IMG/VR virus record: IMGVR_UViG_3300032770_000001
Span: 372,001 to 436,000 of that record
DNA length: 64,000 bases
Direction: 5' to 3' (one strand)
This document shows positions 1-59,563 of this stretch, piece after piece (positions within the stretch are counted from its first letter, which is position 1; each line of letters begins with the position of its first letter). The translations under genes were made by a program, and so were the position numbers. The notes beneath the pieces are model-generated. The model was not told where the DNA came from, did not search any database, and saw only the letters and a program-made list of their open reading frames with translations.

Positions 1-47
1 CTTCCCAGATACGGAGCGCCTTGTTGTACGTGCAGGTGCCATATAAT

Positions 48-770
48 TTAACTCCAGTCGTCGCCATAGTCTTGACGTTGAATCCACTGTCCCCACAGGC
101 TTCGTTTGATGACCATCGCGTAGGTGAAAAGAGTGTCGTGGTTGGGGCTCCACATTTGCACATGCCCGTGGACGATCTGAACGTTCACGTCATAGTTCAA
201 CTGCTTAAAGGTTTTCCACTCGCGTTTCGGTTCTCCGAAAGCTTTGTGAATCCCATGCGATGTGTTCCGGATATAGCCGCCGAACGAAAGCCGCAGGTCT
301 GGATCGGTCAGGTAATTCTCAGGGTGTGACGCCGGGAAGCCGGGTGGGACATCGAATGCCACGCGAACCTCATCCATGTTGAACCCGCCTTTGGGCAAAG
401 GCATCGTCCACGACACCGTGAACCAACCGTACTTGTGATCCGCCAGCGTGGTCAACAATTTACCGTCTTTGTCGTAGGCAACGGTGTCCGGGAATTTCGC
501 ACGAAGCTGAGCCAACTGCTCGTCCATAGTGGGCGGCGGTGGAGGCGGAATATACTTCTTGCTGATCTTGAAGTCGTGTGTCTTGCTCAGGTTCTCCAGC
601 GATTGGTTCGCTGCATCGTGCTCTTCGCAGCACGCCAGCCCCTCGCGGAAGGTGCCTTGGTCATCTGTCCAGAACGTCACGAAACAGCCGCAGGTGAACT
701 CCAGTGTTCTGCCGAACGACGTTCCAGTGGTGCCATAGCCGTATTCGAGCTTACTGCACACGTTGTCCAT
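48..770 (-). CDS. Protein with C-terminal prokaryotic E2/UBC-like (family E) domain, probably catalytically altered
   Basis: Pattern LPKGGFN..EVRVAFDVPPGFPASHPENYLTDPDLRL...WSPNHDTLFTYAMVIKRSL resembles Prok-E2 family E. Start placed at 770 by TAATG overlap with the upstream stop. Confidence 0.6.
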   Translation of the reverse strand: MDNVCSKLEYGYGTTGTSFGRTLEFTCGCFVTFWTDDQGTFREGLACCEEHDAANQSLENLSKTHDFKISKKYIPPPPPPTMDEQLAQLRAKFPDTVAYDKDGKLLTTLADHKYGWFTVSWTMPLPKGGFNMDEVRVAFDVPPGFPASHPENYLTDPDLRLSFGGYIRNTSHGIHKAFGEPKREWKTFKQLNYDVNVQIVHGHVQMWSPNHDTLFTYAMVIKRSLWGQWIQRQDYGDDWS

Positions 771-1681
771 TAACTGCCTACCTTGGAGCCGTCCAGCCAC
801 TCAAACTCGCCCTGTTCGCCAACTGGGAGATACTTGCTGCAACCACAACAAAACGTGGAGCCATAGAATTCAGGGTCGCGAGCATAAGTTTCAGCGATAG
901 CCTGCCCCATACTGGTGATGGTGCCGCAGCCGGAGTTCAACTGTGCCTGTGTCCAGAAACGACCGACAAGATTGCTGTCTTCGCGCTCCGGATACTTTTC
1001 GTAAGCGACATAGTCCCACTTTGCGTACTGGATTTTCTCTTCGTCCGTCAAAGGACGAGTCGGATACTTGGGACGCACGCCGACGTGTTTGTAGGAGAGG
1101 CGCACCGGGCGAATAAACCCCTTCGAACGTTCAGTCTCGGATAGGACCCAATGATCTTTGTGCTGCCCGGTGACTGGGTCGATGGGTTGCGGGGCTGAGC
1201 CATATTTATCGACGTAGTCCGGATCAGCCGGACGCCCGGATGCGGTGACGCGACGGCTTTCGAAGCTCCCCTTGCCGGGATCGGCGGGACATTCTTCGGT
1301 CTTTTCCTTGGGGAAGATTTCGCCGTCCTCAAACAGAGCACGAATCTTCTCCTGCTCTTCATCAAGCTGCTTCTGGAGTTCCGGCGTCATGGCAACGTTG
1401 CCGCCCCAGCTATTTATGGATTCCATGCCACGGGCTTTTTCAGCGGGACAGGGGAGAAGCGGACGCCCGTCAGTTACAGTGTCGTTGCTGTGTCCGGTGA
1501 AGGCGATGCCCCACAGTTGACGAAGTTCTTGCCAGTCTGGATGACGATCACAGTATTCGCATTCGCCGGGGGCGTGCAGGACACGTTGATCGCAGTGTGG
1601 AACTTGACCGATATGTTCAAAGCGGCTCATACCAGTACAATACTCAAAGCCCTCTGAAATATTCTGCCATTTGTGGGGCAA
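770..1681 (-). CDS. Hypothetical two-domain Cys/His-containing phage protein
   Basis: N-terminal PHCDQRVLHAPGECEYCD module and C-terminal VLSETERSKGFIRPVR...AETYARDPEFYGSTFCCGC module. True start may be 1630. Confidence 0.6.
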   Translation of the reverse strand: MPHKWQNISEGFEYCTGMSRFEHIGQVPHCDQRVLHAPGECEYCDRHPDWQELRQLWGIAFTGHSNDTVTDGRPLLPCPAEKARGMESINSWGGNVAMTPELQKQLDEEQEKIRALFEDGEIFPKEKTEECPADPGKGSFESRRVTASGRPADPDYVDKYGSAPQPIDPVTGQHKDHWVLSETERSKGFIRPVRLSYKHVGVRPKYPTRPLTDEEKIQYAKWDYVAYEKYPEREDSNLVGRFWTQAQLNSGCGTITSMGQAIAETYARDPEFYGSTFCCGCSKYLPVGEQGEFEWLDGSKVGS

Positions 1682-1814
1682 TGTCGATTACTTCTGTCCG
1701 GCAGCCGTTACAAACAAAACTCACGGTCGGACCGTTGCCAAGACCCGGCGACTCGTAGAGGAAGGTTGCGATCTTTGAACAGCGGTCGCTACCGTAAGCG
1801 CAGGGGATGTTCAT
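1644..1814 (-). CDS. Small Cys-containing hypothetical protein
   Basis: MNIPCAYG...VCNGC portion of ORF 1644..1940; fills the gap between neighbours. Confidence 0.4.
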   Translation of the reverse strand: MNIPCAYGSDRCSKIATFLYESPGLGNGPTVSFVCNGCRTEVIDIAPQMAEYFRGL

Positions 1815-1822
1815 ATCCCGCG

Positions 1823-2215
1823 TTAGAGAAACGAATGCAAGAGATGGACATGGTAAATCGTCTTGCCGTTCATCTCCGCTGGCAGGCTTAGGTGTTTGCT
1901 GCGGGTCGTCACTAGGATCAAAGATTGAATTTCCGAACACTTGCTATATCTCCAAAGCTGCCGCGTCACTAAAGACTGCGACGAATCCACCTTCACTTCA
2001 ATTCCGATGTCGCCAACCAGAAAATCGATGCGATCCCACGCTGAAAGCAGATGCTCGGCTTCGAACGTTAACCCCAATTGGGTGAGTAGAATGCCGATGC
2101 CGCGCTGAAGCTCTTTTTCGTCTTTGTAATGAAACTTTGTGTTATAGATCGCTGTCGCTAAGTCTTTGGCTGTCATCTTCGTCGCCGGGGTCGCATTGTC
2201 CAAACTCATCCACAT
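1823..2215 (-). CDS. PD-(D/E)XK nuclease-like protein
   Basis: E..LQ...RIDFLVGDIGIEVKV...RQLWRY matches the D...ExK...QxxxY motif. Confidence 0.65.
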   Translation of the reverse strand: MWMSLDNATPATKMTAKDLATAIYNTKFHYKDEKELQRGIGILLTQLGLTFEAEHLLSAWDRIDFLVGDIGIEVKVDSSQSLVTRQLWRYSKCSEIQSLILVTTRSKHLSLPAEMNGKTIYHVHLLHSFL

Positions 2216-2471
2216 CCATGTGACCTATCGCATTTTCTGAAAGCTGATGCAGTGTGGGTTCCGGTTCCGAACGTATGCCGCAATCCGGATCATGTCCATG
2301 CTGACTGCATTGAAAGCATTCCGAGCATTTCAACCATTCACTACACCCACAGGGGAGATCGGTGGGAGATTTGTCGCTATACAACAGGCTACGCCCACAC
2401 TCGCCATCCTTGAAATCGCACTCTCGATCTGGGTGTTCACTTTTGCACTTCGAACAGAATGTCGTCGCCAT
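2142..2471 (-). CDS. Cys-rich hypothetical protein
   Basis: MATTFCSKC... with several CxxC motifs; GGAG upstream of ATG 2471. Confidence 0.4.
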   Translation of the reverse strand: MATTFCSKCKSEHPDRECDFKDGECGRSLLYSDKSPTDLPCGCSEWLKCSECFQCSQHGHDPDCGIRSEPEPTLHQLSENAIGHMDVDEFGQCDPGDEDDSQRLSDSDL

Positions 2472-2847
2472 CTTTCCATCTCCGATATTGTTCAGGCATA
2501 CACACCGCGCACGGTCGATAACCCGCCATGATCGCATCGTACTCGTCAGCGAAGAAAACACGGTGTTTGACGTATTGGCCCTTGGCTATGAATCGTAGTG
2601 CGCTGGGACAATCCAACCGACCATAAATCTTGAGCTTCCGGTGTCCGCCGAATTTCCCTTTACGGTTAATCTGGTAGGGCTGCCCAAAGCAGTTAATCAG
2701 GGTATACTGCTTGCCATGGCGGATACGACGTGCGTACCATTCCAGTACGGCTTCCTCGTCGCTCTCTTCAGAGACCGGGATTGCCCTTTGCTTCCGCTGT
2801 TTTCGCGTCAGCATCTCGACCATCTTGCGCTCTGCCTTGCTGCCCAT
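2437..2847 (-). CDS. Ada metal-binding domain protein
   Basis: KIYGRLDCPSA...RVFFADEYDAIMAGYRPCAVC is the Ada Zn-binding signature. Confidence 0.8.
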   Translation of the reverse strand: MGSKAERKMVEMLTRKQRKQRAIPVSEESDEEAVLEWYARRIRHGKQYTLINCFGQPYQINRKGKFGGHRKLKIYGRLDCPSALRFIAKGQYVKHRVFFADEYDAIMAGYRPCAVCMPEQYRRWKDGDDILFEVQK

Positions 2848-3130
2848 TCGGGACTCTCCACATTACTCCAATACTGCGGAGAAATGAGGCGTCCTGCATG
2901 TTGATTGTGGTTTTTCTTACGCAGGATGAACACTGACAATCCCATGACACCACATGGCGGGTACGAGCATAGAACAAAGACTCATCGACATCATCGTAAT
3001 GCTGATGCATCCGTCTCTCCTGTTCCCAGCGCAGCATATCGAGCCGCTCACGCATGAGGTCGGGATCGAGGCCCCAGCCGCAGAGGTAGTAGTGTTCCCA
3101 TCGCCGCTGTGGTTCCGGTTCCCAACCCAT
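2768..3130 (-). CDS. Hypothetical protein
   Basis: ORF in operon context; CxCxxC motif. Confidence 0.45.
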   Translation of the reverse strand: MGWEPEPQRRWEHYYLCGWGLDPDLMRERLDMLRWEQERRMHQHYDDVDESLFYARTRHVVSWDCQCSSCVRKTTINMQDASFLRSIGVMWRVPNGQQGRAQDGRDADAKTAEAKGNPGL

Positions 3131-11451: not shown

Positions 11452-13557
11452 TTACCGCATTCTTTTGCCGCCCATTTTTCGGACCCAACGTGGGTCTGAA
11501 CGGCGTCCTGCGCCGGGGATTCCCGGCGTTCCCATACCCGGCACCCCGCCGCCCATGCGCTGCATACGCTCGCGAAGACGGAGTTCCGCCATGCTGACAC
11601 CCTCAGTGGAAATCAGGCGTCCGGCACCACGGGCTGCCTGCTGTTGAACCACGAGCGAACGGCCTGTCGGGTCGAGTCGCAGGTTGCCCTGTTCGATGAG
11701 CCATTTCTGAGCGAGCAGAGCCACAAGCTGAGTCGCGTCCACCATGTCGTCATGGGCTCCCTTTTCAATCGGGGCGTGCACGCGGATGCGATACTTGGAT
11801 ATGACATCGGTTTCCACCATCTTGATTTCATCCACGTATTTCTGGATGTCGGGGAAGAAGGCGGTTTTGTCGTTGATGAAACCACGGAGAGCATACGCCA
11901 TCTCCGAGTTGATCGCCGGGGTCAGGTTCACAAGCTCCATGCCGCGAATGTCGTTCTGTTCGAGCAGGGCGATAAGCTGACGACCTGCGTGTTGGTCGCA
12001 GACACCTTGGTAGCATGGCAACTGTTTGTTCATGTAGTTCAGCCATACGAGCACGTCACCCAGCGGCAGAACTTGGAAGTCTACGTATTTCTTCTTACCT
12101 TCCGGATCAGGTTTGACGCCCGGACCTATGAATTCTTCGCCGCAGATCATGCGGTCGATGTAGTCATAAACGAGCACGATACCGTGGTTGACGCCTTGAA
12201 CTTCAGGACGCTGACGGAACTCAAGGTGACCGATAGCCAGAGCGGTAGCGTCAGACGCGGTCGAATTCGGATCGGTGACGTTGATGCCGCCAAGGTCAAG
12301 ACCCCAGAAGTATTGGCGTCCCAACTGCTCAAGGCTGAATCGGGTAAGATTCTTACGACCGGGATCGATACATGCACGCACGTCCACTTCGCGGACATAC
12401 GATTCGGACGATTCCAAGAATTGTCCGCCGTATTCGGCCTTGAAAGTCAATGGGTTCTTACGGTGCTTGTCACGCAAGAAGCCCGGTTTGAGGGCTGGGT
12501 TCATTTCCGCTGATGAACAGGCAAGCACGAACGTGGGGTTGTCGTCGTTGACGCCATCTTGCAATGCCATCTTGTAAAGGTCGTACATCATACCGACCTT
12601 CTTGAGAGGCGAGGAGATCGACAGAATCATCGAGTCCTGATATTGAACTTTCTGGGTGACTCGCTTACCGTTCTCATCGAGAACCGGATTCCCATTCTCA
12701 TCTTCAGCATCGACAGTTTCGTAGTGATGGAAATCACCAGCAGCCGGGGTTGCGGCGACGTACATGTCTTCTGACGTTGAACCTTTTTCGGAACGGAAGT
12801 GAGCGAACTCGTCCAATGCTAGGAAGACCGATGAAGGGCCGCGCACGGCGTTGGTGGTGCAAGGCAGTGACCACACAACGACCGATGGCTTAGCGTCTTT
12901 GCGATCTTGATCGGCACGCGAACGGAACGTCAGGCTCTTTGAGTTGTTGTCTTTCAGGTAACCATTGAACCACTGCGCACGGTTGACGGCAGCCGAGAGT
13001 TTCTTGAACAAACGTCCGGCTCCGGTTTCGTCCTGAGCAAGGAAAGTGAAATCAATCTGTGAGCCATCTGCCATGCCGAAGTGCTGCTGCGGCGAGTAGA
13101 TATTGAGAAGCAGGTAGAGGCGGTACGCGGCGATGGCGGCGACAAGTTCAGATTTACCACCACGGCGACCGCAGAATATGACGCCTTCGTTGAAGCCACG
13201 AGCCGGGATGTCCCGCCAGTCGTCGATGTTGCAGCGACCCTCTTCGTAGCAGATATGCAGGTATTCTTCTTCCGTGACTGTGCGAATGAGTTGGTCACGG
13301 AAAGTGTTCCACATGGGCACCATGCCCCATGGGGTGCCGTCCGGTTGCTTGATAGTGTCCGCCCAGTACGGCTTATAGTCGAAGGGAACCGCACACAGAG
13401 CCTTGAGGATCACTCGCTGAACGGGGCGCAGAATAATGCCCGTGCCGCCCGGTCCTTCGACGAAGTCGATGGCGTTCAGCTTATGTGTTGGGTCATCGAT
13501 ATGGTCGAGCGTCAGATCGGCTACGACCGACTTATTCTTACCACGTTGAATCGGCAT
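11452..13557 (-). CDS. terL: Terminase large subunit
   Basis: LRPVQ adenine-binding motif, Walker A CGRRGGKS, Walker B LALDE, coupling ISSP, nuclease GLDLG and HDDMVDA. Confidence 0.92.
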   Translation of the reverse strand: MPIQRGKNKSVVADLTLDHIDDPTHKLNAIDFVEGPGGTGIILRPVQRVILKALCAVPFDYKPYWADTIKQPDGTPWGMVPMWNTFRDQLIRTVTEEEYLHICYEEGRCNIDDWRDIPARGFNEGVIFCGRRGGKSELVAAIAAYRLYLLLNIYSPQQHFGMADGSQIDFTFLAQDETGAGRLFKKLSAAVNRAQWFNGYLKDNNSKSLTFRSRADQDRKDAKPSVVVWSLPCTTNAVRGPSSVFLALDEFAHFRSEKGSTSEDMYVAATPAAGDFHHYETVDAEDENGNPVLDENGKRVTQKVQYQDSMILSISSPLKKVGMMYDLYKMALQDGVNDDNPTFVLACSSAEMNPALKPGFLRDKHRKNPLTFKAEYGGQFLESSESYVREVDVRACIDPGRKNLTRFSLEQLGRQYFWGLDLGGINVTDPNSTASDATALAIGHLEFRQRPEVQGVNHGIVLVYDYIDRMICGEEFIGPGVKPDPEGKKKYVDFQVLPLGDVLVWLNYMNKQLPCYQGVCDQHAGRQLIALLEQNDIRGMELVNLTPAINSEMAYALRGFINDKTAFFPDIQKYVDEIKMVETDVISKYRIRVHAPIEKGAHDDMVDATQLVALLAQKWLIEQGNLRLDPTGRSLVVQQQAARGAGRLISTEGVSMAELRLRERMQRMGGGVPGMGTPGIPGAGRRSDPRWVRKMGGKRMR

Positions 13558-58603: not shown

Positions 58604-59563
58604 TTAGTTCTCGCCGTAGTTGGCGGTCGAGTTGAAGCGACCATTGACCGTAAGACGCTGCACGCCGGACGGGTTGAACACGAGGAAGCCGAGGTTCTCG
58701 AAGATCGAGAAGCCGATCTGACGGAGGTCAGGACGGTCGGCGCTCATGACCGTGAGCGGAATACGCTCTGGGATAACGCCGAGGAACTCTGCGTCCGCCA
58801 GAATGTAGATCGAGCCGTAGCCGACCTTACGCGACTGGAGGAGCGTTGCGCCCCAGAGATAGCCCATCACGCCCGTTTTCAACAGCTTGCGCTGTGTTTC
58901 GCGGTCGATGTTCTGTTGGGTCCACTTCAACAGGTCCGTGTAGTCACGGGGGTTGAAGAAGACGAACGCGACTGAGAGGTCATGACGCTGCACCTGACCA
59001 AAGCCGTCTGCCATCGAGTTGATGTCAATCGGAGCGTTGATCGGAATGTCAGGGTTGTAGACCGGATCATTCGAGTTCTTACCCGCTGCGCTGTTCGCGA
59101 CACCGTCAAACAGAACGAACACGTATCCGTCTTCGGCTGCGCCCACTTCGGCTTTCGCCAAGTTCAGTGAACGAGCAACCAAGTCGAAACGGCGCTCTTT
59201 GATCTGCGTGATCGGGATCATCGGATTGGACACGATTTCGAACGTCGGAACCGTGACGCGCTTCGGTTTTGTAACGCGGACGATGTCACCACCTTCTTCG
59301 CCGACGATGAATGCTTCGACGAAGGACGAACCCGGAGTCGAGCCAACGGTCATCGCGTTGACATCGAATTCCTTGTCGTAGATGGGCAGTGCGCCATCCG
59401 GAAGAGTTTCGACCATGAGAGCCTTGCGAGCAATGCTCATATAGTCACGGCGACGACGCAGGGACGGACCGAGCGAAGCCGCAAGCTTCTGACGCCCACC
59501 CGCCGTCTTCAAAAGTTGGCCGAGCATTTGCGTCTGCTGTTGTGTGCGAGAAAGTTGTGCCAT
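58604..59563 (-). CDS. Major capsid protein (HK97 fold)
   Basis: Position after scaffold and decoration genes, strong RBS and terminator; RRDY.SIARK...LPDGALPIYDK, FEI.SNP, GYLWGA motifs of large-phage MCPs. Confidence 0.85.
   Translation of the reverse strand: MAQLSRTQQQTQMLGQLLKTAGGRQKLAASLGPSLRRRRDYMSIARKALMVETLPDGALPIYDKEFDVNAMTVGSTPGSSFVEAFIVGEEGGDIVRVTKPKRVTVPTFEIVSNPMIPITQIKERRFDLVARSLNLAKAEVGAAEDGYVFVLFDGVANSAAGKNSNDPVYNPDIPINAPIDINSMADGFGQVQRHDLSVAFVFFNPRDYTDLLKWTQQNIDRETQRKLLKTGVMGYLWGATLLQSRKVGYGSIYILADAEFLGVIPERIPLTVMSADRPDLRQIGFSIFENLGFLVFNPSGVQRLTVNGRFNSTANYGEN

Follow-up and report, generated by a model that had tools for sequence, protein, structure and literature searches.

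A stand-alone BubB-type E2-like protein without the catalytic serine in a 455-kb wetland phage: a candidate decoy of bacterial Bub conjugation

Why would a phage carry a single E2-like protein of a bacterial ubiquitination-like pathway, without the rest of that pathway and without the residues that make the enzyme work? This question is raised by a gene in a 455,708-bp virus record (IMGVR_UViG_3300032770_000001), analysed here within a 64,000-nucleotide stretch (positions 372,001–436,000 of the record; hereafter the window). The last ~149 bases of the record (positions 455,560–455,708) repeat its first bases (positions 1–149), indicating that the assembly is circular and complete. The virus is a phage, as the window holds a large terminase (11455–13557), a major head protein (58607–59563) and a tail protein. 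No tRNA gene was found in the 64-kb window. Using genetic code 11 only, 642 ORF calls over the whole genome gave TAA 291, TGA 231 and TAG 120 stop codons, which is normal for code 11. The same DNA occurs in several wetland metagenomes, whereas no RNA run holds the region. An earlier note, made from the sequence alone, had described an E2/UBC-like domain lacking a cysteine at 48–560, fused through a polyproline linker to a Cys-rich N-terminus, and had inferred a captured inactive E2 that sequesters host E1 or Ubl in the setting of the CBASS Cap2 and Bil systems.

The ORF runs from 48 to 800 on the minus strand. The likely start is the ATG at 770–768, which overlaps the TAA of the upstream gene by one base (TAATG), and the protein on record (P0002) is the corresponding 240-aa form, whose numbering is used below. 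The features of the locus are as follows.

48..770, minus strand: gene for the 240-aa phage protein (stop codon 48–50, ATG 770–768); an in-frame GTG at 800 would add 10 residues but is less likely.
549..770, minus strand: N-terminal Cys/His module (residues 1–74).
531..548, minus strand: six-proline linker (P75–P80), conserved as PPPPPP(T) in all members of the target's clade that carry the N-terminal module.
72..530, minus strand: BubB-type UBC/E2-like domain (residues 81–233), free of Cys.
318..320, minus strand: codon of Glu151, at the position of BubB Asp299.
162..170, minus strand: codons of His201-Gly202-His203, aligned with the catalytic Ser333-x-His335 of BubB.
770..1681, minus strand: upstream gene for a 303-aa Cys-rich protein of unknown function, translationally coupled to the E2-like gene (context, not a demonstrated partner).
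1..67, minus strand: 5' end of the downstream SNF2-family helicase gene (Pfam SNF2-rel_dom, E 8e-21), which overlaps the 3' end of the E2-like gene by about 20 nt and continues beyond the window.

The observation made in the earlier note was confirmed. Residues 1–74 hold five Cys (C5, C27, C29, C46 and C47), and residues 81–240 hold none. Pfam Prok-E2_E (PF14462) matched at 27.8 bits for the whole protein, 29.9 bits (E 5e-7) for the C-terminal 157 aa alone and 27.3 bits in the genome scan, against a gathering cut-off of 25. The motif comparison in the note was also right, as H-P-E-N-Y in the target aligns with P-D-C-F in operon-embedded cellular homologues and with L-D-M-F in Citrobacter BubB. 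The gene is real, with relatives at 50–68% identity that share a strongly conserved core. The range given in the note covers the linker and the E2 domain, whereas the N-terminal module extends to 770.

To establish which E2 family the protein belongs to, the genomic setting of PF14462 was examined. In genomes of the phylum of an Acidobacteriaceae MAG, strong PF14462 hits lie next to Multi_ubiq and JAB-ThiF genes; 10 of 401 sampled genomes of that phylum have PF14462 above the cut-off. Furthermore, three members of the cellular clade closest to the phage proteins sit in operons of the form regulator (BrxR, or a CapH/CapP-like HTH plus M78 peptidase)–Multi_ubiq–Prok-E2_E–JAB/ThiF–TCAD9–BubE, matching the Bub (formerly 6E, DUF6527-associated) pathway (Ye, Gong, Chambers and Corbett, bioRxiv 10.1101/2024.11.21.623953). 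In two of these contigs the extra TCAD9-domain gene of ~540 aa between the E1 and BubE (L037:8733-10361 and L044:6719-8332) is not part of the core Bub description. PF14462 is therefore BubB, the E2 of Bub operons. The target is 30% identical to one operon E2 (BLASTP, E 3e-16), and hhalign against operon BubBs gave a probability of 99.4% (E 7.8e-22). A fold that was not UBC-like had been named beforehand as grounds for rejecting the original reading; the fold was found to be UBC-like and closest to BubB, with the divergence of the solved BubB structure (Citrobacter BubB, PDB 9eae/9eav).

PHROGs gave no family for the target or most of its neighbours, and tblastn against 50,697 GenBank phage records gave no match; the family appears only in uncultured-virus and metagenome data. 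PADLOC and NCBIfam gave no match for the target, for an intact phage-type E2 or for a cellular BubB. No PADLOC E1-E2 or Bil model matched the target at E ≤ 0.001, although a cellular BubCD used as a control matched the E1-E2 models. CBASS Cap2 and BilB are bacterial UBC-like proteins of conjugation pathways linked to defence, but their E2 parts are Cys-thioester enzymes, and the catalytic Cys that accompanies the HPN motif in canonical UBC E2s is absent from the target domain. The relevant host system is thus Bub, not CBASS Cap2 or Bil.

The reasoning from the missing cysteine had to be corrected. BubB has no catalytic cysteine; it has an invariant Ser (S333) at the position of the E2 cysteine, with His335 and Asp299 alongside (or Lys/His in type II), and forms an oxyester, and the S333A/H335A mutant abolishes conjugation (Ye et al., bioRxiv 10.1101/2024.11.21.623953). 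The absence of Cys is therefore the family norm and says nothing about activity, and the Cys of the PDC motif is not invariant and sits next to the Asp299-equivalent residue. In our alignments the cellular E2s carry P-D-C/M-F and W/F-S-x-H, with D, S and H invariant in one of them (A8). The target reads H-P-E-N-Y and I-V-H-G-H, which maps Asp299 to Glu151, Ser333 to His201 and His335 to His203. Across the 16-member clade of the target, the Ser position is H, F, Y or P and the Asp position is E, K, R or S, so that Ser and Asp are each kept in 0 of 16 members, and His in 6 of 16 (38%).

The register, which rests on sequence alignment without residue-level superposition, is fixed by five clade members that lack an insertion of about 17–20 residues before the former active-site strand. 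Two local alignments, by BLASTP and hhalign, slide this insertion and put Thr188 or Lys190, not His201, opposite the Ser; however, no alignment puts a Ser there, and Thr188 lies in a segment that five members lack. Other family-conserved positions (PPGFP, F153, R160, Q205, W207, P209, N210, L214 and T216) are kept at 81–100% in the clade, with the PPGFP, Q-x-W-x-PN and L-x-T motifs at 88–100%, which is the pattern of a binding-competent dead enzyme rather than a decaying gene. The clade has also changed several positions around the active site (W199I, W202G, R224A and P167I), which could mean a new function rather than simple inactivation.

The origin of the gene was then assessed by phylogeny. 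A profile of the nearer relatives (clade-B profile) found 461 proteins at E ≤ 0.001. Of the 142 sequences analysed, 96 keep the Asp (or Glu)/Ser/His centre and 46 do not. A quick IQ-TREE run on only 132 columns, rooted on the Acidobacteriota-type BubBs, placed the operon-embedded cellular clade (37 rows, all intact) as basal. An 83-row clade (98, a starred branch) holds every phage-context member sampled except P0093, which sits just outside it; inside lies a 32-row all-degenerate clade (96, starred), and inside that the 16-row clade of the target (100, starred; stem length 1.33). The intact/degenerate label changes at least 3 times, as forced by starred branches, and most parsimoniously 9 times. 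Other stand-alone lineages (P0028, P0029, P0042, P0052, P0062, P0064–P0069, P0073, P0075–P0077 and P0081) have independently replaced the catalytic Ser/His with basic residues (WKWR, WHWK, WHWR, WNWK, WWWR) and changed the Asp while keeping all other conserved positions, suggesting repeated conversion into non-catalytic binders. In contrast, most stand-alone copies on phage-like contigs, such as P0024, P0023 and P0060, keep the centre (PDHF ... WSWH) and are potentially active. These are part of the 461 profile hits and are single genes with no E1 or Ubl, 28–35% identical to the target, about 125–155 aa long and without the N-terminal module, and the target's clade is nested among them on the tree.

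All nine sampled contexts outside the basal cellular clade are phage-like, with arrays of small ORFs, DnaB, RecA/SSB, DNA polymerase, terminase and holin, and none has an E1, Ubl or BubE. Two unrelated phage contigs among them carry known anti-defence families within 5 kb of intact phage-type E2 genes: Acb2_Tad1_hairpin on L004 (L004:10485-10691), and Gad2 plus Acb2_Tad1_hairpin on L040 (L040:2572-3231 and L040:10708-10938). In addition, one intact phage-type copy (L014:8001-8402) lies at the end of an Acidobacteriaceae MAG contig (PLHP01000145.1), after ordinary cellular genes (FGE-sulfatase/EgtB-like, histidine methyltransferase/EgtD-like, response regulator and histidine kinase). It may mark a prophage or mobile-element boundary, and gives a host clue (Acidobacteriota).

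The genome of the target lacks the remaining Bub components above threshold. No ThiF was found, and DUF6527/BubE reached only 11.8 bits, far from the gene. Multi_ubiq reached only 16.1 bits (E 0.005), 82 kb away, in a near full-length match to the C-terminal ~65 residues of a 328-aa DUF1599 ("nucleotide modification associated") protein (L036:8986-9969; genome 454682–455668, minus strand). This protein ends in NCA rather than Gly; its C-terminus may be a beta-grasp domain but is not accepted as a Ubl. Outside the window, about 8–15 kb beyond window position 1, three adjacent genes (L035:1229-7732; genome 357225–363731, minus strand) look like signalling or counter-defence functions: a 1518-aa protein with a 2H phosphoesterase domain (2_5_RNA_ligase2, E 6e-11; weak Acb1 hit at 19 bits, below cut-off) plus a weak SprT-like hit, a stand-alone 183-aa Prok-JAB (29.8 bits), and a 523-aa InPase + RelA_SpoT protein. 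The phage JAB was considered as a Bub-type peptidase, but hhalign gave a probability of 1.4% with only the HxHP motif aligned, and it is not used as evidence.

The immediate neighbours gave no indication of function. The 303-aa upstream protein had no Pfam, PHROG, PADLOC or NCBIfam match. It belongs to a run of overlapping or coupled small genes (window 770–3130, minus strand) for Cys/His-rich proteins of unknown function (303, 98, 130, 139, 136 and 120 aa), of which one (2440–2847) has an Ada_Zn_binding domain (27.8 bits) and one (1826–2215) matches phrog_5928 (E 3e-30, unknown function). Related large phages (L007 and L008) share many genes with this genome, but none lie next to the E2-like gene, and the neighbours are not conserved among relatives.

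The N-terminal module is an accessory to the E2-like core, as four clade members lack it. In the clade it reduces to C-x11-12-C-x5-6-H-x3-4-H-x-F-x3-W followed by Y-V-PPPPPP-T, with C29, C47 and H65 (target numbering) invariant and a further His common. It looks like a small CCHH-type zinc-binding beta-hairpin module, enlarged by inserts in this protein. AF2 predicted a hairpin at 29–35/41–47, but with low confidence, and prediction on the module's own alignment stayed at pLDDT 34–68; no fold is claimed. Pfam gave nothing beyond noise (Phospholip_A2_2 at 16.7 bits, below the cut-off of 22), and there was no usable Atlas hit.

To assess whether the protein could pair with a Bub E1, its E2 domain was co-folded with the E1 domain (residues 160–444) of the BubCD from the operon in L037. 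The score was 0.46 (runs 0.46, 0.02 and 0.49) against 0.01 for the best of three controls, the runs agreed in at least 33% of contacts, and partner pLDDT was at least 74. The mark was reached by 58 of 80 solved complexes and 2 of 110 mismatched pairs, but at 0.60 or under by only 7 of those 80 and by both mismatches that passed. This support is weak, and because a like complex (BubCD–BubB, 9eae) is solved, it may reflect likeness only.

Taken together, the interpretation in the earlier note is partly supported: a UBC-like fold, apparent capture from cellular Bub operons and a degenerate catalytic centre hold, whereas the cysteine argument and the Cap2/Bil setting do not. What the analysis itself establishes is the homology to BubB, the loss of the catalytic serine and accompanying aspartate, the solitary position in a phage genome and the nesting of this lineage within cellular BubBs; loss of activity, binding to E1 or Ubl, and inhibition of host Ubl conjugation are inferred. 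We hold the identity as a BubB-derived pseudo-E2 with high confidence. Our preferred, but tentative, explanation of its role is a decoy: during infection of a host with a Bub operon, the protein would bind the Bub E1 (BubCD or BubBD) at the E2 docking site, and/or the activated Ubl, and, because it could neither accept nor pass on the Ubl, would block conjugation in a dominant-negative manner. In this view, the N-terminal module on its rigid polyproline linker would add a second contact or target.

Other readings are each less likely. The E2 domain may bind the Bub Ubl or its conjugates non-covalently without blocking the E1, as eukaryotic UEV domains (Mms2/Uev1a, Tsg101/Vps23) do as cofactors or ubiquitin readers, while the Zn-like module brings in something else, for example a phage peptidase or a phage protein to be shielded. 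This is a functional analogy only, as no sequence relationship to UEV domains was detectable and those are not viral decoys. Comparably unlikely is re-use of the scaffold for a phage function unrelated to Bub, for example as a protein–protein adaptor in the replication or early-gene module next to the SNF2 helicase. The overlap with the helicase gene, the coupling to the 303-aa protein, the frequent location of relatives among replication genes (DnaB, RecA/SSB, DNA polymerase), the long stem branch and the extra substitutions would fit this view. However, the neighbours differ in every relative, the helicases in the target genome and in L040 show no detectable similarity, and retention of the surface motifs shared with operon BubBs is left unexplained.

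Least likely is that the protein is still an enzyme, using His201, Thr188 or Ser172 with the host E1 and Ubl to redirect conjugation to targets that favour the phage. Hijacking of a host E1~Ubl is plausible for the intact stand-alone copies outside the all-degenerate clade, and His203 and an acidic residue at 151 remain in the target, in which BLASTP puts Thr188 opposite the Ser. Nevertheless, no candidate nucleophile is conserved across the 16-member clade, since position 201 varies, the Thr188 segment is missing from five members, and Ser172 is present in only about five.

No paper describing phage-encoded BubB/Prok-E2_E proteins or any anti-Bub factor was found in the literature, whereas BubB itself and its operons are already described. 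Bub operons are widespread (544 were catalogued by Ye et al.), are biochemically unusual in running entirely through oxyester intermediates, and sit under DNA-damage and defence regulators, but no biological role has been shown, and no tested operon protected E. coli from phages. It remains possible, although less likely than not, that phages have repeatedly captured BubB and, in several lineages, killed its active site to make mimics that block the host Bub pathway. These would be the first anti-Bub counter-defence proteins, and their existence would imply that Bub operons are antiviral immune systems, which has not been demonstrated so far. A phage-borne family of BubB homologues is independent evolutionary evidence that phages meet this pathway, both for the copies with an intact active site and for the several lineages in which only the catalytic residues have been lost, and it gives a testable handle on whether Bub is antiviral. 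These proteins are also ready-made reagents, as putative inhibitors for probing Bub function, for identifying sensitive phage–host pairs and for mapping the E1–E2 interface, and they would be a bacterial-virus example of a dominant-negative E2 pseudo-enzyme.
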